Below are positions 687 to 60,600 of a stretch of 64,000 nucleotides of DNA, one piece after another. A program made the position numbers and the translations under genes. Below the pieces are notes generated by a model that was given only the letters and a program-made list of their open reading frames with translations, ran no database searches and was not told where the DNA came from. Source of the DNA: Phaeosaccion multiseriatum (Eukaryota > Protista > Ochrophyta, other classes); the NCBI GenBank assembly GCA_965112735.1, contig OZ218951.1:1240001-1304000 (forward strand), in the 5' to 3' direction. The first letter of the stretch is position 1. Each line of letters opens with the position of its first letter.

Positions 687-3600
687 ATGGAGGAGCCAGC
701 GACAGAGACTCCTTTTTCGGCATTCTTGCACCATGAGGAGAGGCCGGACGGAGACCGCTCTGTGTGGATGGCCTCCCTCCAGTGGAGGCAGAAGCGGAAG
801 CTCCACAGTCGAGGAAGCGGCAAGGAGGGAGAGTACGACAGTGGCCCAGCCACTCGAGGCAGCAGCAGCAAAACACAGCCATTTCCTGCTGCAACAGCGA
901 CGAGTAAGGGGTTGCTTTCCCGTGGCTTCCAACCGCTTCCAGATTCCCACCCTACCACTCCCGCGGCCACTTGTGCCGACGCCCTCGCCTATGTGGAGTC
1001 GGCCCTGCTGGCGACGAGTTGGGGAGGGCTGGCACAAGACGACTACAAAGGCACCCTCTCAAGAAGGCCTGACCTGGCTGGCTCTGGCACGCAAACCCTG
1101 GATCTTTGCCATCATCATCAACATCAGCACCAATCTCAGCGCCAGCAGCGTCACACCCGGGGCGAGGAGGACGAGGAGGACGAGGAGGATATTGGGTCAG
1201 GTCCATCGGGGTGGGTGGACCGAGCTCGGCCGAAGACTGTCTCTTTTGCACCCTCGGACGTGATTTACCATCTCGATGATGACCTTGTGTGGGGCAGGTT
1301 TGGGAAGAAGAAGAAGAAGAAGAAGGAGAAGAAGGAAGAAGAAGGAGTGGGAGGAGGAGCAAGTGCGGACGGATTGCAGGAAGAAAGGATTGGGAAACGG
1401 GACGAAGAAGAAGCAGCGGGCAGGGGAAGGGGGAGACGAAGGAGGAGTGGTGGCCCTCCTTCGCTCACGCACAGGAGGCGGCGACCGCAAAGTTGCTTGG
1501 ATGGAGGCGCGGCCTCGGCCATACTGAGGCGATCTCAGAGCAACATGTTCGATTCACCTTACAGCCCGCCACGCTCGTCTCGTGCCTCTTCTGTCCTCGG
1601 CAGCACTAGCACCACCACCTTGAGGGGGAACAACACCCGCACATCCAGCAGTAATTCAAGTAGTTGTTGTGGTGGTGGTGGTGGTGGTGGCAGGAGCAGC
1701 AGAGAGAGGGAGAGTCGGACCGAAGCAGCAGCCGAGGACGCGGAGGCTGTCCAGCGACTGTTGCTACCCACGTTACAGTGGACCCTTGGCGCAGCATCAC
1801 CCGCTCCTGCCGCTGATGGTGGTGGGATGGCGGAAAGCAGTGGTGGTGGTGGTGGCAGAGAGGGGGGGCGGGGTGTGGAGGGGCTTGGTGGGACGAGTAG
1901 TAGCAGAGGCGGTAGTGGCAGCAGGGAAAGCAGTAGCAGCAGAAAGAGCAAGAGGAAGAGGCCGAGGTCGGCCGAACAAGTCATGCTTTGGCGCATTCGC
2001 CACGACAACGACGACGTCGAGGAGGGGAAGGAGGAGGAAGGAGAGAAGGAGGACGAGGACGCGAACGAGGATGAGGGAGAGGAAGCAGTGGCTGAGAAGG
2101 TCAAACGTCGCGCAGGAAGAGGGCGAGAAGCAGAGATAGAGCCCCCTGCGGCTGCGGGTGGAGGCACAACAGCAGCAGACGGCCCCGCCGCCGCAGCAGC
2201 AACAGCAGCAGCAGCAGTTGGTGGGACTTCGTCGTTGGAGAACAAAAGCGAGAAGAAGAGGGACCTCATGCTGCGGCCCCGATCGCGGATGCTGGGCCTG
2301 CCTCCGAGGGACCACATGGAAGACCTGCTGCAAGATCTGCACGTACGTACAGTACCGATTAGTGGGTGGGTATGGACGGGTCTGGATTATTGACTGCGCG
2401 TGGGCCATTTGACGTATATATGGAGGCGTGCACGCATGCACGTTGCCCAACAACGGAGCGATCACTCTCTACTGTTGTGCTTTCTTTTGAGGTCTACAGT
2501 CCTTCCCCCCTCCCTCTCCCTCCTCCTCTCCCTCCTCCTCTCCCTCCTCCTCTCCTTCTCCCCCTCCTTCTCCCCCTGCCTCTCCCTCTCCCTCTCCCCC
2601 TCCCTCTCCTCTCCCTCTCCATCTCCCTCTCCTCTCCCTCGCCCTCTTCTCTCTCCCTTTCCTTCTCCCTCTTCCTCTCCCTCTCCCTCTCCCTCTCCCT
2701 CTCCCTCTCCCTCTCCCTCTCCCTCTCCCCCTCCCTCTCCCTCTCCTTCTCCCCCTCCCTCTCCTCTCCCTCTCCATCTCCCTCTCCTCTCCCTCGCCCT
2801 CTTCTCTCTCCCTTTCCTTCTCCCTCTTCCTCTCCCTCTCCCTCTCCCTCTCCCTCTCCCTCTCCCTCTCCCTCTCCTTTCCCTCCCCTCTCCCCCTCAC
2901 TCACTCCCTCCCTCCCTCCCTCTCTCCCTCCCTCTCTCCCTCCCCCCATCCCCCTCTTCCTCTCTCCCCCCTCTCATACCTACTCCCCTCCCTCCCTCCC
3001 CCCATCCCCCTCTTCCTCTCTCCGTCCCTCTCTTACGTACTCCCCTCCTTCCCTCCCTCCCTCCTCGCCCAATAACTACTTTAAACCGCTACCTGGCGTC
3101 AGGACCACCGCACGGCGCTGCTGAGACCCGCAAGTGAGTGTCGCGACCGACCACGCCGGACTCTGACTGCCCCGACTAACGCCGTGCAGTGGCCAGCAGT
3201 TGGTGATACAGCAGCAGATGGCGAGCAGGACAAGAGGCAGGAAGAGGAGCCAGTGGTCTTCACCCTCAGCGCAGCATTGGAGACGATGCAGCGTCTGGAT
3301 TCGAGCGACCCCACCGCCCCTTCTCCTCTCCCGACTGGAGGACTGCCTCTCAAGGAGGAGGACTCTTTACTGCACTACCAAGGATGGAAGCGGGACGCAC
3401 GCACCCATGTGCAGCGGCAGCCCTATCCGGCGGTGGCGAGAGTGTTCACCGGTGACAAACGAAGCGCGACGGCGAATTCGAACTACCAACCGCTGCAGGA
3501 GGAAGGAGGAGCTGGGCCTAGGGGATGGGGGGGTTGGAACGGCAGAGGGGACAAGGCAGAGGGTGGAGCTGGAGGCAGAGCGGCCACTGCTGCGGCTGCT

Positions 3601-5308
3601 GTTGGTCGGCCTGAAGGCGTGTTGGTGATGGAGGCAATGCATCGCCAGACTGTGAGACTGGACAGAGAGTCGGGAGAAGCAGCGCTGGGGCAAGACATTA
3701 TCCTGGCGCTGGATGACGTGTGGGGTGTGGATCTGCCTCAAGTACGACCGATGGAGCTTCACATCCCTCACCTGCGCAAACGGGAGGATCTCATCCCTTT
3801 GATGCCTTGCCAGGTCAAGAGAGCGCAGACAAGTGGTGTGCTGGACAACCCGCGCTTCGCTGTGCCGCCTCTGCTGGACCGAAAGGCGAGCCCACTTGAG
3901 ATGTTTGCCAGGAGGAGGGGTTATGCTCCTCCTGCTGTATCACCAACTGCTACTGCTGCTAGCGGTGGTGCTCCTGACGCCCTTGACGATGAAGGCGGAA
4001 CCGGTGGCAAGAAGCGGCGTTGGCGAAGGTGCCGTTTCCTGCAGAAGGGCATCTCCACTCGGAAGATGGAGTGGTCGGCGGCGGACCAAAGCATGCTCAC
4101 CAATGTGGTGCTGTGGAGGGGCTTTCGCCTCGTGAGCAAGACTTTTGTGCTCGTCACCATCAAAGGTGGGCGGGACGGAGGAGAAGAGAGGAAAGGAATA
4201 AACAGGACAGCCTGGAAGCTTCTTCCCTCGCTTGTCTAGCGAACAGAGAGGGAACAACCCTGCGCTGTTCCAGAGCCTCCAGCAAGCAAGCAAGCAGCCA
4301 GCATCTACTGTGGCCCCTGACACCCTGCCCCTTCCCCCATATCCCGTACCCCCCCACTCCCCCCCCCATCCGCATCCACTGCCATCCACTGCCATCCATC
4401 CACCCGCACCCACATCACACTCCAATCAGGGCTGGGCATGTTCGGGCGAGTCTCTGTGGAGGGAGGAGGGCATCACCCCCGCGCCTTGCAGATCGAGGCC
4501 TACAGCGTGGAATCAAGCCGGACATACACGCTGAGGCTGGGTGTTGACTCAATTGCAGGGCTTTACCAACACCACACTGACAAGGTAGGTGGTGTACAAG
4601 GGATAAGAGGCATATGGGTGGCAGGCGGGTGAGGCGGGGAGGTCGTTTCAGTTTCAGTTTCAGTTTCCGACTCCTTTGCTCGACACACTCCCATGCCTCG
4701 ACACTCCTTCCCTCAGCCTTCCTTTTCTGACACTCCTTTCCTCCCGCTCCTTCTTCCCTCCATACTCCTTCGCTCCACACTCCGCTTACTCACTGCGACA
4801 CACCTTAGCTCAAGGCGGGACTGAAGGCGGACCTGCTCGAAGACCTGAGCCGTATGCTTGTCTTCAGCTACAAGATAAGACGCGAGGTGGCTGGATCCAG
4901 CTCCTCTGTGGCCGGAAAGGAGGAGTCCACGACAAGCATCACGAGGCGCTATTACGACAGAGAAGCCTGGACGTGCCTCAGGTATGTGGTGTACGTAAGG
5001 TTATGTATGTCTGTAAGACTATGTGGGGAAAGAGGGGGTGGGCGGGGGGTGCTGAGAAGCGAGGAAGAAAGGACATGTGGGGAGGGGGGGAGGGAGGGAG
5101 GGAGGAAGGAATGAATGAATGAAGGAAGGAAGGAAAGAGAAAGATGTTATTGGAGGCATTTTGAGACAGACGCTCATTCCCACCCCCTCCTCCCTTTTTC
5201 CTTCCCTCCCTCCTTCCCTCCCTCGCTCCATCCATCCCTCCCTCCCTCCCTCCCTCCCTCCCTCCCTCCCTCCCTCCCACCCTCCCTCTCTCCCTCCCAC
5301 CCATCTAT

Positions 5309-6984: not shown

Positions 6985-9900
6985 ACGAGAGCGACGGCGC
7001 AGTGGAGGAGGGGCGGAGAAGCGTTTTCGGCGAAAAGGAAACGGACGATGGAGAGCCACTACAGACCACTCCTTGCGGTGCAGGGAGTGGCAACATCATC
7101 ATCAACAAGGACAACGATGGCGACGACAGTAATAATAGCGGAGACAGCAGGAGCAACAGTGGAGGGAGAAGAGGCACTGACGGGAGTGATGCTGACCTTG
7201 GCTCCGCTCTCACGCTTCCTCCCCTGGCTACTGCGGCCGTAGACAACCTTGTCCACCTCCAGCACCCCCACCAAGTGGACGACCGGGCCGTCTTTATCGC
7301 TCTTCGTTTGGGGATCGATCCCTCGTTGGGACTGCCCCCGGAGGGCAAGTGGCTTTCCCCTGGGGCTATTCGTATGACCGTGTTTGAGCAGAAGGTGGAA
7401 ACCTTGCGTCGGTTGAAATGGCAATTGGAGGCGGAGAGTCGGGCCAGGAGAGAGGCCTTCTTCGCCACTCCGAAGCGGCTGAGAGGGTTGGTGATGGCGA
7501 GGGGCGTCGTCATTTGTGGGTTTCACTTGGTGGCGACTGTGTATGAGGTGAGGAGCAAGCAGGAGGAGAATGAGGAGGAGGGAGGGAGGAGGGAGGGAGG
7601 AGACGGGGGGCTCGAAAACTCCCCCTTTCCACTCTTTGAATCAATCACACTCACCCCCCCTCTCCTCTTCCTCCTCTCCTCTCCTCCGCCCAACCAATTC
7701 GTCCTGCACTCGCATCCCCAATGTCATCCGCTGCCATCTACTGCCGTTCATCCACTGCCATCCCCTTCCATCCCCTGCACCTATCCACCGATGATGATCC
7801 ACTGCCATCCACTGCCGTCCACAACCACCCCCCTCCCCCCCCATCCCCCACTGTCCACAGCCTGCCGACCGTCTGGGAACCTTCAATCTGAAGCTGTACC
7901 ACCCCGGTATGGGGGGCCTGCTCACTCTCCAGATAGGGGCTCACTTAATCACGCAGGCACTGCCGCATGTTACCACAGTGTGTGCCAAGTGGACGCGTCG
8001 CCAGAAAGCCGCCTACCTGTTTGAGTTTCTCACCTCTACACGTTTGACTTGCGTGCTTACTCGCACGGAGAAGGAGGAAGAGGGGGAGGAGGAGGAGGAG
8101 GAAGAGGAGGAAGAGGAGGAAGAGGAGGAAGAGGAGGAAGAGGAGGAAGAGGAGGAAGAGGAGGAAGAGGAGGAAGAGGAGGAAGAGGAGGAAGAGGAGG
8201 AGAAGGAGGGAACGAAGGAGAGGAAGGAGGAGCAGCAGCAGCAGCAGCAAGGAGAGAGTTTCGACGTGGAGTACAGGCGATACGAAAGTAGCGGTAGCGG
8301 CAGCGGTACAAGAGGGAGGAAGCGCCGCCTCCACGAGTGGGACTTCAGCGCCCTTCAAGTCATGCGACACACACACGAGTCACGCACTGGCCCCAACTGC
8401 CCCAGAATGGCTCTCGAACCCCCAAGAATACCCACTCCCTGTAAGCGCTATCAGCTGCTCCAGCGCGACATACTGCGGCCCCGCAGTCTCTTCCGCTGGC
8501 AGGAAACGCCCGTGCCTCCTCCCGGGCACCCCGACTCGGTGTCCTCGAAGCAGCAGCAGGCGCAGAACGAGGTACGTTCGTGGGTTCTTTCCCTTGCTTC
8601 TCTCGCTATCTCTCTGTGTGTGTATGGATGTGTGTGTGTGTGTGTCTTTCCCCCCACTTCCCCCCCTCTTCGTCTCTTCATCTCTCTCCGCCGCTCTCCC
8701 TCCCTCCCTCCCTCCCTCCCTGCCTCTAGACTACCCCTGGACACGGCGACTTTCGCCAGATGCGCGACTGGCATGCCAACCCTCACGGTTACAGAAAGTT
8801 CCACCCCCGAGCCCAGCCACGGAGGAGCTGCGGTCACGGCACTCGAGTGGCTGGAGGGGTCGCATCTGTCGGTACGGAAACGTCACATTCCCGCAGGATA
8901 GGGGTGTTTTTGATGACGTTGTGCCTTTTGAGTGCTTGCTTCGCTCTTTCCAGTTTTTTATCTGTCTATGCAAGGGAGCAAGGAGGGGACGGAAGAAGGG
9001 AAGGAGACAGAGAGGAAGGAAGGAGGGAGGGAGGGAGGGAGGGAGGCGATGAAGATCTTCTCCTTGTTATTGCACTGAGCTTTTCAGGCCGCATCCCCTC
9101 ACCCCTCTCTTAACCCTTTTCTTCAACCGTTCTCACCCACCCCCTCCTCCCCCCCCACGCCACTTACCTCCATCTCCATCACCCACCCACAGGCGGCCAG
9201 AGGGGCATATTCGCGTTTTATCGCAACATATTGGCACCAGCGGCTGAGGAGTATCGGCTTGAGGTGTATGTGCCCAAAGGATTCTCTCAAGGGAGGACCG
9301 CGTCATCACCATCACCACCATCACCACCATCACCACCATCACCACCATCATCATCATCATCAGCAGCAGCAGCAGGAGGAGGAGGAGGAGGAGGAGGAGG
9401 AGGAGGAGAAGGAGTAGAAGCAGGAGCAAGAGGAGGAGGAGGAGAAGGAGTAGAAGCAGGAGCAAGAGGAGGAGGAGGAGGCGCAGGCGCAGGAGCAGGA
9501 GCAGGAGCAGGAGCAGGCTTTGTGTCCAGCTGCACCACCTTCATCCTGACGCTTCAAATGGAGGATGTAGCTCGCATAGTGGCACTCGACACAGACGGGA
9601 AGAGACGGAAGGGTACGTGGGAGCTCTTGCGCCGCGCTCTCGAGGGATGGATGGCAGCGGATGGTAATGTCAATGGCAGTGTGTGGCATCATCAGAGCGT
9701 GAGAGGAGGAGGAGGAGGAGGAGGAGGAGGAGGAGAAGGGGGTGGAGGAGGAGGAAGGACTCCTCCTGACTGGGTGTTACGGGATGATGGCTCCAGAGTG
9801 GAGGAGGAGGGAGAGGGGGCTGCTGTATCACCAACGGCTGCGGTTCTGTGGGACGAGGTGGCAAGGTCGCTGTTGGGGCACTGCTTTTGGTGCCCCGCAT

Positions 9901-11678
9901 CAGCGGCCAAAATGACTTGTCCGCCCCTTGTGGCGGAGATTAAGGAGCAGCAGCGGTTGCAGGAGGCGGTGGAGCAAGCAGCAGTAGCAGCAGCAGCGGC
10001 CGCACTTGGAGATACACTAGCAGCAGGAGGAGGAGGAGGGAATGTGCAGCAGCAAGATCAGACCGCGGCTAAGGCAGAAGGCAGTGGACGGCTCAGTGGG
10101 TCTGTGGGAGGACCTGGGGCTGATGGTGGCGGTGCCCGAGAGTGGTATGAAGCACCTTACACACCGCTCGTGTCGGCAGCGCCCATCACGAGCGTCATTC
10201 TCGGTCAAGAGGAGGAGGACGACGAAGGGGAGGAGGAGGAGGAGGAGGAGGAGGAGGAGGAGGAGGAGGAGGAGGACGAGGAGGACGAGGAGGACGAGGA
10301 GGATGAGGAGGACGAGGAGGAGGAGGATGATGATGATGAGGAGGAGGAGGAGGAGCATGATGACGAGGACGATGATGACGACAAAGAGGGAGGAGGAGGC
10401 CTACACGGGGAGGATGGCGAGGAATCAGCTCATACAAGCAGCGGCGGCGACAATGTGGCAAGTGCGCAGCATGGCGAGGAAAGAGAGCGAGAAGAGGCTA
10501 GCACGGTGATAGACGACATGGATGCTTCAGCCGTTGGTGGTTCAGCTGCTGGTGGTTCTTCAGCGCGGGTTTATACACGACGGCAAGTGGAGATGGCGTC
10601 CGTGTTACCGCCATCACCACCACGACAAGTGCCGGAGGAGGAAACGCCGGAGGGAGAGCAGTTGGTGATACGGCCGGAGGAGGAGGAGGAGGAGGAGGAG
10701 GAGGAGGAGGAGGAGGAGGAGGAGGAGGAGGAGGAGGAGGAGGAGGAGGAGGAGGAGGAGGAGGAGCAGCTGTACTTGGCAGTGGGGACGCTTGTGATGA
10801 CACGCAGGCTGAACGTGGTGTCTATCAGAAAAGGCCATCCTGCTCCCATGACTCTCATCGCCTCTGTGCACCAGTGGCACTCCAGTGTTGTGGTGTGGTT
10901 GCTCGAGCCGGAGGGGGGAAGGCAGCTCATGGCGCCTCGAGAGGACGCGTCCTTGGATCGGGCCATGATTGCGGACTTTCACACCCAAACGGCGGAGGAG
11001 GTGGAGATGCTGCTGGAGCTCAGTTTGTCCGAGTATGTGCTCTGTGATGGTGGCGATGCGGATGCTGGCGGGGGGATGAGGAAGGAGGACGAGGAGGAGG
11101 AGGAGGAGGAGGCTGCAACCGTGAACACGAGCACGGGGAAGAAGAGGAAAGATGCCAACAGGAAGAAGAAGAACAAGAAGAGCAAAGGAGGGGCAGCGGC
11201 GGCGGATTGGTCCATCAAGGTGTCGTCGGACAACGACCCCGAAATTTCAATGGAGTACGACATGGATGCCTATGAAAGGGCAGCTGAAGTGGCTCGTGAA
11301 ACGGCAACGAAGAAGGTCCGGGGCAGGCTGGAGAACAATCTTAAGGCGGGGGAGGAGGTGCGTAAAGCTCTCGCTGTGGAGCAAGAGCAACGTAAGGCCA
11401 AGGAAGAGAGGAAGAAGAAGATGGTGGAGTTGAAGCTGGTGGCAGGGGCGAAACTGGACGGGGATAGCAGTGGTCATGAAGAGGAGGAGGAGGAGGAGGA
11501 GGAGGAGAGCGAAATCGAGAGCGAGAGGGAGTGGGAGGGAGACTCGGCGGAGGAAGAAGACGACGAGGACGACGATGATGGCGATGATGACGACGACGAC
11601 GAGGATGAGGAGGAGGAGGAGGAGGAGGAGGAGGAGGAGGAGGACTCTAGCCACGATGACGAGGTAGATGAGGAATGA
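687..11678 (+). CDS. Very large multi-exon protein (~2,820 aa) with a degenerate C2-like domain, about 4 copies of an unassigned beta-rich module, and long acidic/Gly/Ala low-complexity tracts
   Basis: Exons 687-2342, 3190-4165, 4430-4584, 4809-4981, 5372-7547, 7861-8571, 8730-8871, 9193-11678. All introns are GT-AG with consistent phases; total 8,475 nt = 2,825 codons. C2-like segment: VYVVLLWRGQSCRTSSV...ASW...VRVEVWVDHQGTDKADEMCSEG. Confidence 0.75.
2510..3065 (+). repeat. Intronic polypyrimidine (CTCTCC)n tract containing a ~155-bp direct duplication (about 2601-2755 and 2756-2880)
   Basis: The non-periodic core CTCCATCTCC(C)CTCTCCTCTCCCTCGCCCTCTTCTCTCTCCCTTTCCTTC appears twice. Confidence 0.85.
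8086..8200 (+). repeat. Coding (GAGGAGGAA)n poly-Glu repeat
   Basis: Near-perfect 9-bp periodicity. Confidence 0.9.
10677..10766 (+). repeat. Coding (GAG)30 poly-Glu microsatellite
   Basis: Uninterrupted GAG run. Confidence 0.9.
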
Positions 11679-12579: not shown

Positions 12580-13938
12580 TCAGTTTGTCTTCTTGACGTC
12601 AGCAGGAGTCGCCTCTGCCCCGTTGCTTCCGCCCACCTTCCCTGCCTTCCCTCCCTTCCCCCTCTTCCCCAACAGCAGGCCCATGACAGCCCACACGAGG
12701 GAGACCCCCACGGTCGATTTGAGCAGATTCCAGGTGATGTCGGTCCACTCTTCACAATCCAAATCAGTGTAGTCGATGTCGTCGCCATTTGCCCACCTGT
12801 GGAGTTTCAGTTGTGCTCCACGTCAGTGATGTTAAGATACCAATCAAGGGAAGCAATCCATATCGATGCCATTGCCGAATGCTTCCATGGATAGCTCAAG
12901 CTGCACAATGTCGGTCAAGGGGTCCGTATATCGACATCGACTCCTCCTTCCCTGTGTGTTTCCCGGACAATCCAACTCAAACTCAAACTCAAACTCACCT
13001 TGTGTACATCTTCTCTTGGATGGTCCACCCCCGCTTGGAGCGAAGGGAATTGAAGGTATCGAGCAATGGCCAAGGCCTCTCGCGTAGGGTGTCGATATCA
13101 GAAAGAGAGTGGCCCCACTGACAAGGCAGGAAAGGAAGGAAGGAAGGAAGGAGGGAAGGAAGGAAGGAAGGAAGGAAGAAAGGAAAGGGGGAAGGGAGGG
13201 AGGGTGTGAGTGGGAGAGAAATGAGTGAGAGAGACAGGGAGAAAAGACATGGTTGGGGGGGAAAGAGCGAGAGGGTGTGAGAGAGAGAGAATGCCAGTGA
13301 GAGCCAGTGAGAGCCAAAATGAGCCAGTGTGTATGCCGGTCAAAGAAGGACCACTGGTACCACTGGTTGCGAGTCCCACATCCACCACAACCATTATTTT
13401 TCTTCCTTCCTCCTTCTTGTTCTTGTCACTAACCTGGTCCCATCTCAGCGCAAAGGTGGCCAAGCTAGGCAAGCGCAGTCTGTTGCCATCCGGCTCTCCT
13501 GCGAAGGAAATGTAGAACATGACACGCTCAGGCGCGTCCTCATCCTCGTGGCCACCCCCTCTGTGGATTGTGTTACAGTTCATGAGGGCAGCCGTGCCTG
13601 GGGGGGTAGTCGCACTCACACCACGCTCGTCGCATACGTCATCACTATAGGGTGGGTGGGTGGGGGTGAGGGCGTTGATGCAACCGTCCGACGCACCACA
13701 CACACAGACACACACACACACACATACACGAGCGCAGACGAGTCGTGTGAGCTTTGGTGTTCCACAGAGTGAGAGAAGCAAGTAGTGAAATGGTAAACCG
13801 AGGGATCGCGTGTAGTGTAGTGTGTCGTATGTGACCACCGTTAGGTTGTGTGGGGGCAGATCACAAACACGACGGCACGCGAGGCTACGTGACAAGACAG
13901 ACAGACAGGCAGACAGACAGGCAGACAGACAGACAGGC

Positions 13939-13969
<31 letters not shown>

Positions 13970-14052
13970 TAGACAGACAGACAGACAGACAGGCAGACAG
14001 ACTGGCAGACAGACAGACAGACAGACGGATAGACAAACAGACAGACAGACAT

Positions 14053-14083
<31 letters not shown>

Positions 14084-44775: not shown

Positions 44776-47700
44776 TATCACCAACTGCTGCTGCTGCTCC
44801 TCTTCGAGCTCCTGGAGCTTGAGCTTCTTGCTAATCTTTTGCAGCTTCGCACAGAGTGTGGCAGGGGCTGAAGTACTGAGCTTGTTCATGATCGGGGCCG
44901 GTAAGCTTCCCCTGAGGTCAGTGTGGACGATCATGGTCAGCAGGCACCCCCCAGTGGATACAGGCACCATGAGGAAGCCACAGAGCATGACGTCACCCCT
45001 GACGTAGCCATTGACCTTGAGGGGGCGCGGCAGGCAGAAGGGGGAGAGAGGGGGGGGGGATGGAGGGAGCGGGGGGGAAGTGAGCGAGAGTGGAAGCGAG
45101 AGAGAGAGAAGGGAGAGAGAGGGGGGGGGGATAGAGGGAGAGAGAGCGAGAGAGAGAGGGAGAGAGAGACAGAGAGAGAGAGAGAGGAGAGACAAGAGAG
45201 CGAGCGAGAGAGAGAGAGAGAGCCTCCGTTTAAACCCACCATGGGCATTCGTTCGTGGACGGTGGAGCGGTTGCAAAGGTATGTAGTGCCGTCCTCCAAG
45301 CCACCCCACACGGAGAGAAGAGTGAAGTCGCGAGGTGCGGTGGGCCAGATTGGCTTGTAACGGGTGCGCTTGAAGGCTGCTTGGTGACCTGGCACTGCCT
45401 CGATCACCTGTGAAGTCACGGTGGAGTGGGGTGGGGTGGAGTGGGGTGGGGTGGGGTGGAGGGAGGGAGTGAATGGGTGAGTGAATTGGTGAATCAGTGT
45501 AGCGGAGGGGAGTGGAGTGGAGTGGAGTGGAGCGGAGAGGGGTGGAATGAATGAAGTGAATTGGATCGGAGGGAGGGAGTTGGCGAGTTGGGGGTGAGTG
45601 AGAGTGAATGGGTGGGGGAGTGGACCACGGGCGCACAGACTGTCACAGACCGGGGGTGGGGTGAGTGGACAGATGTATGGATGGATGGAGATGGACGGGT
45701 GGAACAGAAACACTCATGACACGACACAGCCACCCTCCCTCGCCCCTCCCGGCGTCCCTCCCCCCGTCCCTCCCTCCCTCCCTCCTCTCCCTCCTTCCCT
45801 CCCTCCCTCCCTCCCTCCCTCCCTTTCCTTTCTCCCTCCCTCCCTCCCCTCCCTCCCCCATTCCTTCCTTCCCTCCCTCCCTCCCTCCCTCCCTCCCTCC
45901 CGTCCCTCCTCCCTCCCTCCCTTCCTCCTCTCTCACCTCAATGCAGTCGAAGAGGTCATCGTACTCCCCAATGCGCGAGTCGTCAAGCAAAAAGTCAAGC
46001 ATGGTGGCAGGGTTTGCTTCCAGAGGCACGCGCACGCGAATCATGTTCCAGATGGTGCCAGGGACCACGGCCTTCCACAGCCGCACGCCGCTCTCTCCAC
46101 CGTCCCTGGCCAGGGCCCAGTTCACCTTTTTCAGTTTCGGATTCGGTTTCAGTGTCAGTGTCGACAAATCAAATCGATCATAGACACACTACATATATAC
46201 ATCAATACCAATCACATAGAAACCAGCATCGATCACGTGGACATCAATAAATCGATATCGATATCGAGCTCACCTGCGGCCCGTCCATGCACTCTCCGTC
46301 GCTCGCCAAGGCCAACATGTCTCTCAGGGCCGCCTCTCTCCGTTGCTGCACCTTTAAGCGCATTGCCTCGGCAGGTTCCAGCAAGAACGACGAGCGGCGA
46401 GTGTGCCCTGTGCCGGCGCCACCACCCACTGTCACCCCCTCTCCTCCCATTCCAGCCCCCCCCTCGGCCCCTTCTCCTCCCTTTGCCACCGCGGCTGCTG
46501 CAAAGGCTGCAGCTTCCGCTTCCTCCCTCTCAATGTCCTCTTCCTCTGCAGACAGTTCCGAGAGCGTGTCCTCGTCGCCCACTGCCATCCCCCTCCCATC
46601 CTCCTCCGCCCCCTCCTCCCCCTCCCCTCCCTCCTGCTCCTCCTCCCTCTTCCCCTCCTCCCCAGACGCGTTGCAGAGACTCGCAATGTCCGCGATACTA
46701 TCCTGAGCGTCACCACTGCGAGCCCCCATTCCCATTTGACTGTGACCATGGTTGTGGATGAGTTGACGCGCATCTGCCCCCTCCAAAGTCTGCTCCACCA
46801 CCCACTTGAGCTCTTGCAGGATATGAATAGGCCCTATGAAGTGACTGCAAGCCTCAAGCTCCTCGAAGGCGGGCAGGAACTCCGAAAAGCAAAGCTGCGT
46901 GAAGAAGGTAACTTCGCTTTGCTGCTGTATCACCAACTGCTGCTGCTGCCGCTGCCGTTGCCGCTGCCGTCGCCGCACCTTCTCTTCGTCCTCGCCGTCG
47001 TCGCCCTCCTCCTTCTCTTCTTCGGTCAGTGCTCCCCAGAACCTCCTCCCCACCCTCCTCCCTTGTTGCCACAGCTGCCGCCGCTGCTGCATACCCCATG
47101 AGAAAGCACCTCCTTCCTGATCCTCCTCCTCCCGCTCCTCCTCACCATCCTCCTCCTCCTCTGCCACCTGCACCTCTCTCTTGGGCACGATAACAAACCC
47201 CGAAGTACCCAGTCTCCCCCTTACGTACTCAGCACAGGGGGGCAGGGCAGGGTGCTCTACCGAAGCATAGGCAATGATGCCGCCCCCCCCGGGCAAAGCA
47301 TGGAAGATCCTTAAAATAACAAAATCGCGCTTGATGCGCTGGCGGCGGTGGGTGCAGGTGAACCAGTAAATAGCGGTGTCGTCGGCGGCACCCTCGCCCT
47401 CTTCTGCTCCTCCCCCTGCTGCTGCTGCTGCTCCTTCTCCTACTCCTGCTCCTCTGCCCCCGGCTGCTGCTCCTCCTCCTCCTCCTCCTCCTCCTCCTCC
47501 TCCTCCTCCTCCTCCACCACCCGAATAAGAGGCGGCGTCATCAGAAAGGGCAGCCGCGCCCACCGCCGTCGCCGCCGCCGCCGCCGCCGCCACAGCTGCC
47601 GTACCACCAACAGCAGCACCAGAAGGAGCAGAGGAGGGGCGGGGGGATTGGGAGTTGGAGTTGAGCGTTTCTATGACTACCTGCCGATCGACCACATAGT

Positions 47701-48024
47701 CTGGGCCAAGCATTGCCGCACTCTCCAGCAAGATGCCGGAGAGCTCGTCGGCACTTGCTCGTACTGTTGTGCTGGCCCCCAGCCGGATCTGTGCATGTGT
47801 TGACAGATGACAGACAGCCAGCAGTGGTTGGTCATACAGAACAAGTTACAGCAGTACAGTTAAGAGTACAGCAGTTGGGTGATATAGCGGCAGAGCCAAA
47901 TAGGCAGGAAGAGGAGGAAAGAGGAGGATGAGGGGGAGAGAGAGAACGAGTGAGAACAGAGACTCACTCATACACTCACACATCGAGAGAGAGAGAGATG
48001 GAGAGAGAGAAAGAGCGACACACA

Positions 48025-48078
<54 letters not shown>

Positions 48079-48454
48079 ACGGACTGCTTAGGCCTGGGCT
48101 CGGGGGCTCAGGGCCGTTCCCCGCACCTTCTTGGTACCCGGGATCGGGCACTTGTAGAGCGCCATGTCCGCTGCTTGCGCTGGCGGTGGAGGCGCGTGCG
48201 TGGAGGAGCTGGTGTCAGGACCGCTACCGCTGCCCATATGACTACCGCTGCTGTTGCCGTGCCTCAATTGCACCCATTCAATGGAGGCGTCACTGGCCAA
48301 GCGCTGCACGGACCCCATGATGGAGCGAGCTTCCGACAAGGCATACGTACGACTGATCCTCGGCAGCGGCGCCCGCTCGTCCGCCAGGTCCACAAGAGAG
48401 GCACAGGAGGAAGCGCGGCTGTGCGAGCCCCACCCAGTGCCGTGGATGCTGCCG

Positions 48455-48491
<37 letters not shown>

Positions 48492-48599
48492 GGTTATTGT
48501 TGTTGCCACCGCCGAGCAGAGGCTGACCGTCTCTGCTCTCATCGTCGTCTCGCCTCTGCCTTTGCCCCGCCCCCCATCCCCACCCGCCTCCTCCTCCTC

Positions 48600-48645
<46 letters not shown>

Positions 48646-51600
48646 TGTTGCTGGTGCTGCCTCTGCGATGCCGCCGCTGCTCGTACTGCGTATGATAGGG
48701 CCCGACGTTGTCCGCGAGCGGCGGCGAAGTGGACCCCTTCCCCTTCCCATGCCCACACCAACACCCCCTCCCCCACCCGTCCTCCCTTCGCCTCCTCCTT
48801 CCTGTGCGCGTTCGTCCTCACCTTCCTCATCGAAAAGCAACGCTTGCCCTGCATCCGATGTGTTGCTGATGAACGAGCTGTTGTGTATCAAGCCTCCTCC
48901 TCCTCCTCCTCCTCCTCCTCCTCCTCCTGTGGCGTCCGACATACTCCGCTGCTCTTGTATCACCAACTGCTGCTGTTGCTGCTGCTGCTGCCCACGCCCC
49001 AACAGCGTCCCCCTTAGCACCATCCTCTGTATCTTTCGCATGAGTCGATAGGAAGGTTTCTTGGAGAGTCGATTGATGACCGTCGCCGGCAGGGCACCCC
49101 CCAGGTCCACATGACTATACATGAGCACTTCACTCCCCGCCACAAGCTCATCCTGCGCCCGGAAACCTCCCCCCCGGGGGTGGTGCTGCACGAGGGAAGC
49201 CTGGTCCAGCCCGTTCAGGGTCAGCACTGAGTGGGCGTGGGCGTGTGGGTGTGCGTTTGCGTGCCCTGCTACAGGGGTAGGAGCACCACCACCGGGCGTG
49301 CCACCACCGCCGCCACTACCACCACCACCACCACCACCACCACCACCGCCCTGACCTCCACCTTCCCCGCCCGCGCCTCCGCTGCCTCTCCCTCCTCCTC
49401 TTGCACCACCACCACTGCTGCTATCCTCCTCCATCCTCCCACCCCCGCCCACTCCGCTCTCACCACCACCACCTGCTCCTCCTCCTCCTCCTCCTCCTCC
49501 TCCTGCTCCTACTCCCCCTCCTCCCCCACGACAGGCCGCAGCGGCAGAAACTGCGGCTGAAGCGGCAGCAGCGGCGGCTGCACTATCGCCCACAACTTTC
49601 CGGAGCTGAAAGGGCGACACCAGCGCAGGCGTAATTACCCACCCACACGACACAATACTCCCCCTCACGTACTTGGGCGTCTCGGGAAAGTTGGGGTGCT
49701 GCACTGATTTCGTGGCAATCACCACCGTCCCATCCGCAAATTCCTCCCACGTAGACTTAATAACAAAGTCCCTCGGTCGCGTCGGCCACACCGCTTTGTA
49801 GGAGCTCCATCGTATGCTGGTGCGGTCGTTGACTCTCTCCACGTGGCGAATGCTATCGAACATGCCGTCATACTCGGCGATTCTTGAGTCGTCAATAAGC
49901 AGGCTAAGAAGCTGCGCCGGCGTGGCCTCACAGTGCATCGACGCTCGGATTCTACCGAGTGAAGCACCGCGCACTTGACTCGTGGCCACCCGTATTCCTC
50001 TCCGATCTCGCACGACAAACCAGGGGCTCGTGCCCGGCCTCGGTGCGTCGGCCACAGCCGACAGAAGGTCTGACACCATAAGATGTTCGTCGGACTGGAA
50101 ACCCATGTTGCTGGAGCGGCGTTGGAGCTGCGATTGCGCCTCCAGAATGGCCGAGTGAGGGTCCTCATGCACGTGTGCTGCTGCTGTAACACCAACTGGT
50201 GCTCCTGCTGGTGCTTGCCCTCCTCCTCCTCCTCCTCCTCCTCCGCCTCCTCCTCCCCCGGCCCTTTCCTCCTCTCTCTCTATCTCCCTCTCGCTGTCGT
50301 ATTCGTCCTCTCCGTCTCCGATCAGCCACTCCTCTCCTCCCTCTAACAGTCCCTCAATCTCCGGCTGAAACGTCCCCTCTTCCGCACCGCCATCCCCAGC
50401 AGCAGCAGCCGCAGCCGCAGCCGTAGCAGCTCCTAGCGCTACCGCGGCGGACACAGACACAGGCCTCCCCGGTCTCCCACTTGCTGCTGCCGCTCCCTCT
50501 GCTATCGCTGCCACTGCTGCTGCCTCTGCCGCGTCCCCCTGCCTCTGCTGTACCACCAATTGCCGTTGTTGTCGCTCCTCCAGCCGTGCTTTCTCCCCCT
50601 GGTGCTCTTCTCTCAGCAGGCGCAATGCCTCTTGCTGCTTCCACAGCAGCTCCTCTCGCTCGCTTTGATGTACTTGCTTCAGTTGCTCAGGTAGAAGAGA
50701 CTTGGCTACCTCCTCTTCCTCCTCCTGCCTTTGTCTCCCCTCACTTCCAGCGATCAAGCCTGACCAGGGTGAGATGCGCCCTGCTCCGAGCAGCTCAGTG
50801 AGCCGACCCAGCCGGCCCGTCGCGACCATTGGTGTTGTGGCAGAGCTCTGACGGTTCTCTGGCGCTCCATGTTCGGACGTGCTTCCTCCCCCCCACAGCA
50901 ACGAGAGACCCCCTGCTGCCCTTGCTGCCCCCTCCTCTGCTCCTCCCTCCCCTCCCGCCGCACCACCACCAACACCACCAGCAGCAGCAGCATTGGCTGC
51001 CATCCCGTGGCAGAGCGCATCCCCACTGCTGTTGCGTCTGAGCGCTTTGCCAGTGTGCAAGGACGGGGACGAAAGCCGATCTGTGCTCTGCGCGCGCTGC
51101 CCCATCCATAGGCTGTTCCATAGCCCAGTGGTTACTCTATTGGCTGAAGGGTTGCCTTCGGCGGAGTCCCACGTACCTTGATAGGCACTCCGGATGCTGC
51201 TTCCAACCATGGATGACAGCGCCAATGGTCCAAGGCGTGCCGAGGAGGGTATCGTAGCATCGACGAGAGCCGCACCAGCACCAGCACCTGCACCGACAGC
51301 TGGCGATGGAGCAGTCACGGCGTCAGGAGCAGAGGAGGCTGACACTGCAGCAGAGGGGGGAGCTTCCTCCTCTTCTTCGCCCCCAGAGGCACTGCGGCTT
51401 TGTTCCACGTCTTCCCTATCTACTAACCCACGACGCTGCTCACGATGCTGCACACCCGTGGTACTCGTACGCGTAGCCTCCTCTCTCTCCTCTTCGTCCT
51501 CTTGCTCCTGCTCCTCCTCCTGCTCCTTCTCCCCCTCCGCCTCCTCCTCCTCCTCCTCCTCCTCCTCCTCCTCTTCCTCTTCTTCTTCCTTCTCCTTCGC

Positions 51601-52264
51601 CTGCTGCTGTTGATGATGTCCGACGCTTACATCCGCCCGCTCTAGACTCAAGTTGCTTGCTGCTATGCGGCGGAGACGAGTTTGACAAGGGGAGGGAGGA
51701 CCACGCGAGTCAGTGGGCATCAACGGGGTGGATGTGCCTGGCTTTATGGACTAGAAGAGCGGGTGCAGTGGCGTACGGGGGGAGAAAAGAGATGGCATCT
51801 TCAAACAGCACCCCACCTGACTGCTCTCATCGTCTCTGCTTACCCTGTGTGGTCCCACTTCCCCTCTCTGCTGCTTCTGCTTCTGCTTCCCTCGCCGCCG
51901 TCGCCTCTCCACCCTCGTGGGTTGCGCCTTGTCGCCCCTCCCACGTCCCTCTGCCCTCTTCTCCCCAGGAGCTTCCATTCTGCTGCAGACGCCAGTCCAG
52001 TAGAGCAACGAAGCCCAGGTTACATCCCACCCACAAGACAAAGTACGCGACTGAACCAGCGCTCCAGAAAGTAATCCAGCTCAGACCCACCACCGACACC
52101 ACCACACAGCGCCCTCGAGTAGACACAGACTCTTCGAAGTACTGTATGACAGCATTGTCTGCGGCACGCACCCCGCGCCCTCGCTTCTTTCCTCGGATGC
52201 CCTTCCTAGCCTCTCTTGTTCTACCATCCACGGGCGTTCCAGGCGCCGCCGCTTCCGATGGCAT
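44659..52264 (-). CDS. Membrane-anchored protein (~2,060 aa) with three START lipid-binding domains
   Basis: Exons 52264-51844, 51662-48127, 47788-46274, 46125-45937, 45407-45240, 45015-44659 (6,186 nt). START motifs: YKAVWPTRPRDFV...SVQHPNFPETPKYVRG; IKRDFVIL...SVEHPALPPCAEYVRG; YKPIWPTAPRDFT...NGYVRG...HTDLRGSLP. N-terminal hydrophobic hairpin. Confidence 0.88.
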
Positions 52265-52665: not shown

Positions 52666-53856
52666 GGAGGGCACCAATATGGAATCAGCTTCTGCTGAAG
52701 CAGCGGCGGCTTTGAAGACCGCGGCCCGCCTCATTTCCGACAGCGCCCTGTGGGCTGTGCAAGGAGATTGATGAAGTGACGCCCCGCACCATGATGTTCA
52801 AAGCTGGCGTGCCTAGCAATGTGAGCCGATCAACGGCCGGAGCCCTCGCCCGCGGGGGGGGCAACCAAGCGGGGTATGCTGGGCATGCTGAATGCGCTGA
52901 AGGAGAGGGCGGAATCTTCTCCCTCTCAGGGACAAGGTCCTGGGGAGGGGCTCATCATTAAGACGGGGAGAGGGCAGGGGCAGAGCGATGACTGCGCACA
53001 AAGGCTGGACAGATTTCCAAGAGGGGCACTTATTGCGTTATCGTTGTGCGGCTGGGCCCCGGTGGTAAGGGGCTCACCGCGAAAGTCTTGGCGCAGGTGC
53101 CCAAGTCGGTCAAGCGTGTTGCGTTCTTCCACTCTTTCAATGAGTCCAATGTGACTCTACCCGACACAGTGGAGGAGGTGGTGCTCGGAAGGGATTTCAA
53201 CGAACCGATTGCACTCCCTACCTCGCTGAAGAAGCTCACATTCGACGCGCAATCTACATTCAACAGGGAGTTGACTTTGCCAAGCTCGCTTGAGGAGCTG
53301 GAGCTCGGGGAGCGTTTCAACAGGCCTCTGGAGCTCCCTGCGTCGCTCAAGAAGATCAGAATCGGCACGGCCTTCTATCAGGACATGAACGTGACTCTGC
53401 CAAGTTCGCTTAAGAAGATCCGATCAAATTTGGCTTTGCCTTCAATCATGAGGTGATTCTGCCCACAGTTCACTGGAGGAGCTAAGGTTTACCCGTTCCT
53501 CGAGATTCAACACCCCCATTGATCTCCCGGCTGCGCTGAAAAGGTCGCTTTTGGCCACAAATTCACGAAGCAGGTGGTCCTGCCTTGTGGCATCGAGGAG
53601 GTGGTCGTGGGGAAGCTTTTTTTCCGACCCTCTGAAGCTGGGCCGAGATTATGACAAACCTCTGGGCAGATTGCCTGCTGGCCTGTTGCAGCTCAAGGTT
53701 GGGGAGGAATACCCACTGCCTGCACGCCTTCCCAAAGGGCTTGAGGTGAGGGAATATGCTCCCATTCCCCTGATCTGGGCGACGGTCTTTTGTCGCGAGA
53801 GTGATGATGAAAGCGACGAGATGGCGGAAGAGGATGAAGGCGGGGAGAGTGAGTAG
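52666..53856 (+). pseudogene. Intronless FNIP-repeat protein pseudogene, copy 2 (inverted paralog of 16458-17877)
   Basis: Nucleotide-level match to the reverse complement of copy 1, including flanks (e.g. GCTTTGAAGACCGCGGCCCGCCTCA). Frameshifted across ORFs 52876, 53046 and 53551. Confidence 0.88.
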
Positions 53857-54202
53857 GAGAATCGAGAGAATGAGGAGGAGGGAGTGCGTGAGCTGGGAGT
53901 GAATCAGACAATCAAGACCAAAGTAGGAGGTGTGCAGGCACGTCATTCAGGAGAGCTCATTCGACCCCCACCGGGTGATCGCGAAGGGTTTCCCCTTGAC
54001 TGATGCAAGTGCCGCTCGGGATCAGCGAGGGGGGGCGGAGGAGAAAGGACCAAGCTTTAGTCTTTGTATGTAGTCATTTCGGGATGAAGGGAAACGCACA
54101 TCCACAACCCCTCTTCCTCTCCCTCCTCCTCAACAGTATAGGAAGGTAAGGTGTTCCGCAGCGCTGGTTTCACTCGCTTTTAAAAACTGAACTTAACTGA
54201 AC

Positions 54203-57648: not shown

Positions 57649-60600
57649 CGGAGAGAAGCAGATGTGGTTGGTCAGAGAGGGTAATACAGGGGGGCGTCAG
57701 AGGCGTCAGTACTATAGAGAGGGGTTTGCAGGGGTGTAATAGAGTTTTACGAGTATAATGGTGCCTTCTCCAAACAAAAAACACCTCTACAAAATTAGGT
57801 ACTTTGAAGCACGGGGTAACAGAGTGGCGTATTCCCTCCCTCCCACGCCCCCTCCCGACTTACCTCAGGAATTTGAGTTCCTCCTCACTCCAACCCTCGT
57901 CATCATCATCACCAGCAGCAGCAGCAGCGGCAGCAGCCGCCGCCGCCGCCGCCGCCGCAGCAGCCGCAGAAGATCCTCCGAGCGAATTTGTCCCCTTGTC
58001 CATACCAAACCCATCCTCGTCGCTGCTGTCACCGTAGCGAATGGTGCGCTTGCCACTGCTGCTGCTGCTGCTGCTCTTGTCATCGCCAAAGCCTGTGGAC
58101 GTCATGGCCGTTGTGTGCTTCTCTCCAGGCAGAGTGACCTCTGTGTCGCTGTCGTTGGACCCGTTGGACGACAGGGATCTTCTTCTCTCCCTCTCTCGCC
58201 TGCTCTCGCTACCCGCACCCCTCTCAACAGCGTCACCATCCCCCCCCCTCCTCCCTCCCTCCTTGCCCTCTCCCTCCACCTCCTGCCACCCCTCCTCCTC
58301 GTGTAAAGGGTCCCCCTCGCGTTGGTTGTCCTCCCTCCCCCTCCCCCTCCCCTCAGCAGCGGCGTCAGCAACAGCAGCATAGGAGGGAGCGGATACCTTC
58401 CCGCCACAACACCGCCTTCGGATCGCTGAGGAGGCCTGGAGAACGGCCTCCACGTATATAGGCAGGGAGAGGGCGCACAGAAGCGCAAACTGAAGTGTAG
58501 TGAATCGTGGACATGCGGTAGGGCGGGCGGGGGGTGGGGGGCAATGGTGGGGCAGGGCGTCAGGGACAGGGCGAACCCGCTAAAGCAACACAATCGCCGG
58601 TCGGCCACTTGCGTCATACTTCAAAGAGTACGTAAGAGTATTAAAAGGAGTACGTGCATACATACCTGCAGCCAAGTGACCCATCTGTAGTACTCCCTGT
58701 TGCCGCCCCGAGCAAGCTCCTCACCCCCTTCCTCCTCCTCTCCCTCTCCCTCTCCCTCTGAGTCTGACCCCTTGAAGGCGGCCCTCGTCATGACTGCGAG
58801 GGTAGCCACATTGGATATGGCCACAAGCCCTAGTGATGAATTGGTATGTCAATGGGTGTGTGTGTGTGGGAGGGGGGGGGGGGGGGGGTGGGGTTAAGCG
58901 ATGAGAAAAGGAGGGAGAAGTGCGTACTGTAGTAACTATCGTAGACTCCTCCCTCTGCCCCTCGTACAACTACTTGTGCTGCTGCTACAACTGTTTTTGC
59001 TGCGGCCGCAGTACCAACTGCTGCACTGGCGCTCCACATGCTACCTCACTCACCAGCTGCAACGTCAGCAGTCCTGTTCGCAAAGGGCGCGGTGCCCACG
59101 AAGACCATCTCAGTGAAGGCCGAGCATAGGAAAGTCAAACTCTGTACAACGCCGCTATCAACGAGACCTGCGGTGAACAGAAGAGCATCAACGGACCACA
59201 CCAACGACCACATGTCAGACACGTCTATCATGGACATGGATTGGGTTAAGACAGCCAAACAAAGACGCAGGCTCGGCAGCACACACACACACACACACAC
59301 ATAAACACATACAAGGACTCACACACAGACACACGCCCAACCCATACACGCACACATACGCACCCGCAACAGCCGCCAGCCCAGCCCGCATGGCCAGAGA
59401 CCACGGAAGGAAGAGGGCACCGGTGCCTGTAAAGTCCGCGTAGAGAGGCGCCGACCCCACCCTCAGCAGCTCAGTTCGCTGCTCCTCCTCGTCAAAGTAG
59501 TAGCCGTCCTTGCCGCCGGGAGGGCCGCGGGGCTTGCCGAGAGGGACCACGGCGCCCTCCACACCGCCGCTTGAGTTGTGGAAGTACTGGAGTAGGGTCG
59601 AGTGGACGGGATGGAGTAGTGCGGTGGTGTTTGCGTGTGTGCGTGTGTGTGTGTGCGTGCGCGTGCGCAGCGGACGGAGGAAAGGGGGAGAGAGGTGGAG
59701 GCGGGGGAGGAGAGGGGAGGAGAGGGAGGGGCAGAGGAGAGCCAGGAGAAAGCAGTAGGAAGTACAGTAGGAAGTACAGTAGGAAGTGAGTGACAGGAAC
59801 CCGAGCTGGCGGCGGTCAGACAAGAGAAATGTTTCATCGACAGGAGAGAGCAGAGCACATGACATATCACATGACATATCACACATAATAATCGTCCCTT
59901 GTCACTCACCGGCAGAGAGGCCACGGGGGAGGTCACCGCCGGTCGCGGCACCGACATGGAGGAGGACGACGACACAAAGATGGGAGGCGAAGAGCGACCC
60001 GAGCGGCTCACTCGATCACCACCGCCACCGCCGCCACCGCCGCCACCACCGAAACCATGCTGCCCTCCCTGGGTGGAAGACGAAGCGGTGTTGTGGGAAG
60101 AAGAGGCGACTCTGTGGACGGGCGAAGGGGAGGCGAAACGGCGCGGTAACTCCCGCTGTCGCCGCTGCTGCATCACCAGCTGCTGTTGTATCACTAACTG
60201 CTGCTGCTGGCGATGCTCCTGGGCCCCCAGGCTCTGGTCTTGTGAAGAGGAGAGGGAAGAGAGGGGGTAGCCAAAGTAGCCTCGGGAAGCTCGCCGAGCC
60301 ATGCGAGCTCGCTGGTCTGTAGCGCGCACACACACAGATGCGAGAGAGAGAGAGAGGTCAGAGAGAAAGAGAGAGAGAGAGGGGGGAGGGGGGGAAGGGG
60401 ACGAGGAAACGTCAGATTCTGTTGTGATGTTTTGTAAAAGACGTTGAGACGGCCTGCGATGAATGAGTGTCATGTCGACTTACAGAGGTACTTGGACTGC
60501 CAAATGCCCTTGTCGAAACGGCTTAGGCATCTCTCTCCCTCCCAGCCCGACGAGGGGGTGCACCTGATCATGGAGGGGAGGAAGGGAGGAAGGGGGGGGA

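Follow-up and report, generated by a model that had tools for sequence, protein, structure and literature searches.

Coding sequence rich in CAG tracts has been described in the apicomplexan Eimeria. The tracts behind its homopolymeric amino acid repeats (HAARs) prefer coding DNA, are read mostly as glutamine or alanine, less often as serine and rarely as leucine or cysteine, and sit in the loops and tails of conserved proteins; the available part of that report suggests a cause at the DNA level (PMC4199364). The organism considered here is, unlike Eimeria, an ochrophyte stramenopile, Phaeosaccion multiseriatum, and the analysis covers one 64-kb window of its genome, positions 1,240,001 to 1,304,000 of contig OZ218951.1. 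A 15-bp motif, CAGTTGGTGATACAG, with a 9-bp core, TTGGTGATA, recurs through this window, almost always in coding low-complexity segments. The CAG tracts of the window resemble the HAARs, as the latter appear in the same part of the report, in frame spectrum (glutamine in 27 of 67 tracts, GCA-encoded alanine in 19 of 67) and in loop or tail location (a loop of HIS7, a loop insertion in a START domain, a C-terminal extension). What is described there, however, is pure CAG runs and a separate telomere-like repeat, with no recurrent complex 9-bp interruption. The HAAR family covers the carrier tracts, not the 9-bp core that recurs eight times.

The RTE retrotransposons of Lepidoptera carry families of microsatellite-associated DNA (PMC2887409, in its available part). 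As in those families, so far as they are set out there, a non-repeat sequence recurs beside the same type of microsatellite at many unlinked loci. The shared flank of such families extends well past the microsatellite. In the window, by contrast with families borne by mobile elements, nothing is common to the copies past ∼21-24 bp, and the copies are exonic and keep the reading frame.

Interruptions of CAG tracts are familiar from human polyglutamine genes, in which CAA or CAT arises by one-step mutation in situ at each locus. CAA is the commonest single-codon interruption of CAG tracts in the window. The core, TTG-GTG-ATA, differs from CAG-CAG-CAG at seven of nine bases, so a repeated origin by point mutation is not open to it. 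Like stabilising interruptions and the variant repeats of minisatellites, the motif puts a non-CAG unit into a CAG tract without breaking its phase, and conversion can move the variant units of minisatellites; unlike a minisatellite, however, the copies form no head-to-tail arrays beyond one tandem pair. In having short copies that are scattered and in some cases bracketed by short direct repeats, the motif recalls miniature inverted-repeat transposable elements (MITEs) and the footprints of DNA transposons, but it has neither terminal inverted repeats nor a target duplication of fixed length, and 15-21 bp is, to our knowledge, far below the size of any mobile element. A small-RNA target is a poor match, since the copies lie in both orientations relative to transcription and Rfam and tRNA scans of the window gave no RNA gene; a source may lie elsewhere in the genome. 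Templated insertions at repaired breaks, made by polymerase-theta end joining or template switching, measure 10-30 bp, have microhomology junctions and need no enzyme of an element; the motif resembles them in size range, in junctions suggestive of microhomology and in the lack of an enzyme of its own. Such insertions normally copy nearby, locus-specific sequence, and we know of no genome-wide reuse of one template sequence.

The motif is a dispersed repeat associated with a microsatellite, and is unusual in its size of ∼21 bp, its exonic location and its use across the open frames. Short dispersed repeats have usually been left behind by mobile elements or are binding sites under selection, and both classes are mostly kept out of exons. 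Here the coding sequence of many genes, the housekeeping gene HIS7 among them, carries a complex 9-bp interruption flanked by CAG units.

Census of the motif

The 15-mer occurs four times without mismatch in the window, against none expected from 100 dinucleotide shuffles. The core occurs eight times, against 0.14 expected from such shuffles, and every occurrence lies inside the motif, as the first-pass annotation of this DNA had claimed. At up to 0, 1, 2 and 3 mismatches the 15-mer counts are 4, 11, 15 and 24, where an order-5 Markov model predicts 0.01, 0.01, 0.22 and 2.6; the model was trained on the window itself and is conservative, as the copies were included in its training. The copies with 0, 1 and 2 mismatches thus number 4, 7 and 4. 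Profile and indel-tolerant searches bring the total to ∼20 copies in 64 kb when indel and 3-mismatch variants are included, and several more fragments of the left half of the motif were found. In over-representation the motif ranks first among all non-simple 11- to 15-mers of the window.

A similar picture emerges from the 82 sites of the form CAG-N9-CAG. Four of these hold the exact core and four more hold one- or two-base variants of it, which makes it the sole complex 9-mer to recur at separate loci; the other 9-mers seen twice are one dispersed pair at chance level and one local tandem pair. Among the hexamers that follow CAGCAG, TTGGTG is the third commonest, behind CAACAG and GAGGAG. The two comparisons that the first-pass annotation had proposed, with a high-order Markov background and with other CAG-flanked 9-mers, both give enrichment within the window. 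The motif is a real DNA-level repeat, far beyond chance. The coordinates in the earlier list of copies all hold and the list is correct, except that a one-mismatch copy at 40175(-) had been overlooked. The copies, with the open reading frames (ORFs) across them, are:

3197-3211 (+): exact copy, read AVGDT in ORF 3085-4236(+), outside long CAG tracts
3935-3949 (-): exact copy, antisense to ORF 3085-4236(+), read AVSPT
9823-9837 (-): one mismatch, synonymous; antisense in ORF 9114-11675(+), AVSPT; flanked by the direct repeat GCAGCC, outside long CAG tracts
10531-10545 (+): three mismatches (CCGTTGGTGGTTCAG); a further unit like it comes next; possible degenerate copy, uncertain
10659-10673 (+): one mismatch, QLVIR in ORF 9114-11675(+); no CAG tract, flanked by the direct repeat GCCGGAGG
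19671-19685 (+): two mismatches, AVGDA in HIS7 (imidazole glycerol phosphate synthase hisHF); outside long CAG tracts, flanked by the repeat GGGGCA
32656-32670 (-): one mismatch, an A>G change by which the closed frame loses its TGA; spanned by no long ORF, probably non-coding; outside long CAG tracts
37011-37025 (+): three mismatches with the left half intact (CAGCAGTTGGT), QLVEQ in ORF 36624-37901(+)
37183-37197 (+): one mismatch, TVGDA in ORF 36624-37901(+), in a frame other than the glutamine frame of copy 37011
40175-40189 (-): one mismatch, synonymous; antisense in the coiled-coil ORF 37898-41569(+), LYHQL; no CAG tract, flanked by the repeat GCTCC
40451-40468 (+): deletion variant CAGCAGTTGATACAGCAG, with GTG lost; QQLIQQ in a long polyglutamine tract of ORF 37898-41569(+)
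44773-44787 (-): exact copy, QLVIQ, in the CAG/GAG C-terminal extension of a gene with three START domains (3xSTART)
46925-46939 (-): exact copy, QLVIQ; part of the 14 aa (QRQRQRQQQQLVIQ) inserted into a loop of START domain 2
47599-47613 (-): three mismatches, two of them synonymous; AVGGT in exon 46247-47845(-)
47825-47839 (+): three mismatches, degenerate; antisense in the 3xSTART intron between exon ends 48091 and 47845
47869-47890 (+): one-base insertion, degenerate; antisense in the same intron (48091/47845) as copy 47825
48955-48969 (-): one mismatch (synonymous CAA), QLVIQ after (Q)8, ∼40 aa past the first START domain in ORF 48091-51750(-)
50184-50198 (-): one mismatch, PVGVT in ORF 48091-51750(-), where copies 48955 and 50548 are in the glutamine frame
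50548-50562 (-): two mismatches, QLVVQ in ORF 48091-51750(-)
60168-60200 (-): tandem pair 60186/60168 with an 18-bp period and two mismatches in each unit, three of the four changes synonymous; QQLVIQ QQLVMQ in ORF 59466-60479(-)

Reading frames and codon use

When each copy is assigned to the longest ORF that spans it, eight are read as QLV[IVM]Q-like, five as AVGDT-like (the GCA-alanine frame), two as antisense AVSPT and one as antisense LYHQL (the leucine frame); one has no long ORF. None is in the serine frame, in which the motif contains TGA. The motif thereby occupies four of the five frames left open to it, on both strands. The 67 tracts of at least three CAG units in the window are distributed in much the same way: glutamine 27, GCA-alanine 19, antisense GCT-alanine 9, serine 5, cysteine 3, leucine 1 and no ORF 3. 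In frame and orientation the copies follow the CAG tracts at large, and the motif thus acts like a passenger of these tracts, about 85% of which are without it. Single ORFs mix the frames: ORF 48091-51750 reads its copies as QLVVQ, PVGVT and QLVIQ, and ORFs 3085-4236 and 9114-11675 each have one sense and one antisense copy. The earlier claim that the motif is independent of frame and strand agrees with all of this.

At least three copies are exonic and antisense (3935, 9823 and 40175), and two are intronic and antisense. The non-coding copies are just 32656, which has no long ORF, and the degenerate intronic copies 47825 and 47869; the earlier statement that the motif also occurs in introns is borne out by this degenerate pair in the 3xSTART intron and by no other copy. 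The ORFs that span the exonic copies all stay open over 215-1224 aa (384-1224 aa outside HIS7), and several copies lie in unique non-CAG sequence, as in HIS7 and the coiled-coil ORF.

The motif is spelled in rare codons: TTG makes up 17% of leucine codons, ATA 18% of isoleucine, GTT 11% of valine and GGT 19% of glycine codons. The chance of spelling L-V-I as TTG-GTG-ATA is ∼0.018 per instance, and the spelling is found in four of the five LVI copies; selection on amino acids cannot repeatedly yield the same nucleotides in this way. The paralogous START domains associated with copies 44773 and 48955 make a similar point, because the codons that they share show synonymous saturation (CTG/TTA and TCC/AGT, for instance, for the same residue) while (CAG)3TTGGTGATA is identical in both. 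Judged from this comparison, the motif at 44773 and 48955 would be either younger than the START duplication, homogenised, or constrained as DNA. Protein selection is not what maintains the nucleotide identity of the copies, in line with the view taken in the first-pass annotation. A protein motif QLVIQ of glutamine-rich regions, with the other frames coincidental, is barely tenable as an explanation: 8 of the 16 exonic copies do read QLV[IVM]Q and the changes in these are mostly synonymous or conservative, but the remaining eight read AVGDT, AVSPT or LYHQL, sometimes in one ORF, the TTG-GTG-ATA spelling is far above chance, and no such peptide is present in orthologues or in eight START homologues. 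Frame use and codon spelling effectively refute the protein-motif reading.

Anatomy and decay of the unit

The extent of the unit was defined by aligning the 15 copies with at most two mismatches, positions outside the 15-mer having played no part in the selection of copies. CAG stands at -3 to -1 in 12-13 of the 15, and CAG-CAG at +15 to +20 in 9-13 of the 15. Conservation thus reaches one or two CAGs to each side, and past these there is merely a fading CAG periodicity: information content is at background past -9 upstream and +23 downstream of the first base of the 15-mer, which limits any shared flank to some three CAG units per side. The unit is ∼21-24 bp, (CAG)2 TTG GTG ATA (CAG)2. Six of the 15 motif positions are invariant in the 15 copies, which is partly an effect of ascertainment.

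No longer shared or transposon-like body surrounds the copies in the alignment, and no k-mer family from the window list joins the flanks. The motif has no inverted termini and is not palindromic. Tandem arrangement is confined to the pair at 60168/60186 and a doubtful case at 10531, all remaining copies being solitary. The longest repeat shared by the two flanks has a median of 6 nt, against 4 in controls (p = 8e-5); the excess is mostly CAGCAG on both sides, and the repeats range from 4 to 14 nt at variable distance. Locus-specific direct repeats of 5-8 bp flank the copies at 9823, 10659, 19671 and 40175.

Three other structural readings were considered. The inverted pairs 3197/3935 and 9823/10659 were rejected as the terminal inverted repeats of an element, because the two pairs point in opposite directions and lack target duplications. 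A micro-intron (GT..AG within GTGATACAG) was rejected since introns of 9 nt are too small to be spliced. A hairpin formed by the CAG units, the core being its loop, is unsupported: DNA folding of five copies with their flanks gave z-scores of -0.01 to -1.9 and no common fold.

The copies with at most two mismatches carry 15 changes, of which 13 are transitions and two are transversions. Counted on the strand of the motif, in most cases the sense strand, A>G changes number seven and T>C just one. The core has a GC content of 33% in a 60%-GC genome, and the pattern of its decay, in which transitions towards GC predominate, looks neutral or mutational. Read in the frame that each copy occupies, eight changes are synonymous and six non-synonymous, where ∼32% synonymous would be expected (P about 0.03-0.08). 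The substitutions, with their synonymous excess, indicate that the copies are genuine and translated and have had time to diverge; they evolve like weakly constrained coding DNA drifting to the G+C content of the genome. The strand asymmetry of the substitutions (seven A>G, one T>C) may be due to transcription-associated mutation bias or to selection, the numbers being too small to decide.

Host genes and relatives

The window is ∼60% G+C and extremely microsatellite-rich, with long ORFs that have introns. HIS7 is spread over at least three exons, and its database matches include the chrysophytes Chromulina and Dinobryon. The copy in HIS7 encodes TAVGDAE and lies in the loop between the invariant DQYDVRE and VRNLGKP, which spans 27 aa in the window and 3-13 aa in 10 homologues; the copy sits in a lineage-specific loop expansion. 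The best named relatives of the START ORF are the ochrophytes Scytosiphon, Chrysoparadoxa and Phaeothamnion (55-71%), and the START and HIS7 searches gave 56-71% identity at best over the regions aligned by BLASTP; they turned up neither a close relative nor the proteins of the window themselves.

The minus-strand ORFs 51750-48091, 47845-46247 and 45642-44662 are collinear with a metagenomic protein of 1169 aa with three START domains (P0135/P0281). The minus strand of 44662-51750 is probably one 3xSTART gene with introns, and not a set of tandem START paralogues, to judge from this collinearity. Compared with P0135/P0281, the version in the window is inflated by runs of Gly, Glu, Gln and Asn, and three of its copies of the motif fall in added or altered places: (i) the 14-residue insertion that carries copy 46925 coincides with an alignment gap, P0135/P0281 being without it, (ii) the CAG/GAG extension that carries copy 44773 starts past the end of P0135, and (iii) where copy 48955 stands with its (Q)8 the orthologue has an unrelated stretch of equal length. 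Copies 44773 and 48955 occupy homologous positions, ∼40 residues past the last helix of two paralogous START domains, and are for that reason not fully independent. The copies in HIS7 and in the 3xSTART gene are lineage-specific additions. An earlier count of five unrelated genes was overstated: several genes are involved, but the copies attributed to START proteins are all in one gene with three START domains, and Pfam did not verify either the C2 or the TRP-like gene name.

The 7-kb contig of the orthologue has one CAG tract and no motif, and eight loci of the closest relatives available, ∼111 kb in all, gave no copy with up to two mismatches. One of these motif-free loci, L001, has 49 CAG tracts along 24 kb. 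Four of the loci from relatives (L001 and L025-L027) were examined for a comparable recurrent motif, and none was found.

Further afield, prokaryotic assemblies totalling 596 Gb gave one match to the 21-mer; for the 19-mer there are 20 metagenome loci and three viral loci, with only about a dozen distinct contexts in total. None of these metagenome and viral contexts is a CAG-tract setting like that of the window, and the number is at chance level. One exact 19-mer, at 3721-3739 of JACLAD010007979.1 (L006), lies in the C-terminal tail of a glycerol-kinase-like ORF, where it is read AVGDT and followed by GCA and ACA codons on a contig of 49% G+C; this match is probably chance. The motif sequence is absent from the searched literature, in which only unrelated primers matched it, and searches on microsatellite interruption and conversion returned nothing relevant. 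Rfam has no family for it. The earlier judgement that this is not a described element holds in the searched literature and in Rfam.

How the motif may have spread

From how far this DNA-level repeat extends, from the frames that it uses and from the orthologous sites that lack it we infer, tentatively, a micro-repeat particular to this lineage, which non-allelic templated repair has copied from one CAG tract to another. The unit would propagate at the DNA level between CAG.CTG trinucleotide tracts, most likely by short-tract ectopic gene conversion or by template switching in replication or repair, and the CAG units on its two sides would provide the homology or microhomology. As the interruption is 9 bp long, the frame of the recipient would be preserved and each copy would take on the frame and orientation of the recipient tract. 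Selection would remove the unit only where its TGA falls in frame. After copying, the unit would decay mainly by transitions towards GC, under ordinary weak purifying selection at the protein level.

Non-allelic exchange is plausible in this genome. A gene of FNIP repeats has an inverted duplicate (16373-17570 and 52990-53941, ∼35 kb apart) whose blocks are 86%, 89%, 96% and 98% complementary, and this mosaic identity suggests gene conversion between the two copies.

Several observations weigh against copying between tracts. Within the window no conversion event was seen and no donor was found. About half of the copies (3197, 9823, 10659, 19671, 32656 and 40175) are outside long CAG tracts, where the homology available for conversion is only 3-6 bp, and copies with just one or two CAGs of their own are not predicted by simple tract-to-tract conversion. 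The direct repeats of 5-8 bp fit microhomology insertion at least as well as conversion. The copies are not significantly clustered (median nearest neighbour 836 bp, against 1426 bp under a null of CAG-tract positions, p = 0.17), so there is no sign of preferential local spread. The prevalence of this single interruption over all others is left unexplained, nucleotide identity in old paralogues would also be expected from selection at the DNA level, and the whole case comes from a single 64-kb window.

An alternative that is unlikely, yet must be taken seriously, is an 18-21 bp unit pasted into breaks from one abundant donor; candidates are satellite DNA built of the 18-bp unit CAGCAGCAGTTGGTGATA, a gene present in many copies, or an RNA that serves as repair template. 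Under the same explanation, with the same doubt attached, the unit would bring its own CAGs and later slippage would seed CAG tracts from it. Copies outside CAG tracts do bear one or two CAGs on each side, the flanking repeats GCAGCC, GCCGGAGG, GGGGCA and GCTCC resemble microhomology junctions or short target duplications, and the flank repeats are longer than in controls, but most of that excess is CAGCAG on both sides, and repeat lengths and distances vary, unlike a transposase footprint. The 18-bp tandem period at 60168/60186, the single clean 14-aa insertion that the motif and a CAG/CGG tract make at 46925 relative to the orthologue, and the 4/7/4 distribution of mismatches, which is compatible with a single master sequence, all speak for a pasted unit; the window holds no donor array or source gene, and the large majority of its CAG tracts are without the motif. 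Rather less probable is a functional cis-element under nucleotide selection, a putative site for a DNA- or RNA-binding protein lying in exons. CAGTTG conforms to the Myb core CNGTTR, otherwise saturated paralogues keep their synonymous sites identical over 15-21 nt, the density is high and fairly even over many genes, and the six invariant positions point the same way, in part through ascertainment. A binding site sits badly, however, with copies that avoid promoters and follow the frames of CAG tracts, with transition decay at nearly every A and G instead of at a few degenerate positions, and with the absence of the motif at orthologous sites and in the ∼111 kb of relatives; it has no Rfam family and no unusual DNA fold, and an RNA element in particular would have to act from both strands relative to transcription, given the exonic and intronic antisense copies.

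The first-pass annotation had offered conversion or templated repair and a binding site as the two possible mechanisms. The former fits better, because of the CAG-tract-like distribution, the transition decay to GC, the absence in relatives and the location in exons and not promoters, but the two are not decisively separated. An artefact, whether adapter or primer remnants, hallucination by the basecaller in CAG repeats, or polishing that carried the interruption of one locus over to other CAG tracts, is very unlikely. GTTGGTG..ATA does loosely resemble what we take to be a nanopore PCR primer, but the copies have independent substitutions with an excess of synonymous ones, the exonic ones all keep their ORFs open, several stand in unique non-CAG sequence, and the single match of the 21-mer in 596 Gb, with the 19-mer at chance level, is unlike a common adapter or vector. 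The identity with an adapter or assembly artefact that the annotation had named as refuting its claim finds no support in copies that have diverged and a 21-mer that is nearly absent elsewhere.

It is doubtful, though conceivable, that the unit is a gene-less, self-propagating micro-element of 18-21 bp that hijacks break repair or template switching at CAG tracts. Were this so, and were the density of the window to hold, the genome would have thousands of copies; such an element may be transmitted with a bias and give rise to new coding CAG tracts, and it would continuously remodel the disordered regions of the proteome in all frames. If about one copy per 3 kb holds genome-wide, the motif would in any case offer (i) a system for microsatellite exchange between unlinked loci, (ii) a system for the birth of low-complexity protein segments, and (iii) a test of whether a sequence can spread with host repair enzymes alone, and would be relevant to how coding CAG repeats have spread, so far without explanation, in genomes like that of Eimeria.

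Other features of the window

A second dispersed motif is present, a 10-bp unit GATGGCAGTG (GATGGCAGTGGAT), at 4374-4396, 7726-7819 and 24484-24516 and at ∼12 weaker sites. It occurs singly or in short tandem runs, in G-rich and apparently non-coding stretches. Long tetra- and hexanucleotide microsatellites are very dense (2506-3064, 13895-14132, 38568-38727, 45733-45928 and many others); they include (CCCTCT)88, (AGAC)59, (CTCA)40 and (CCCT)48 and lie outside long ORFs or in alternative frames, and the trinucleotide repeats of the window (GAG, GGA and CAG) sit inside ORFs. The gene at 41912-44076 (+) encodes a chromatin reader with a clear bromodomain and weak, sub-threshold matches to a PHD finger and to ARF_AD/BRWD_AD, and carries no copy of the motif. 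Near-perfect non-coding tandem duplications are found at 35679-35757 and 41807-41880, with 3.2 copies of a 25-bp unit and 2.1 copies of a 35-bp unit.

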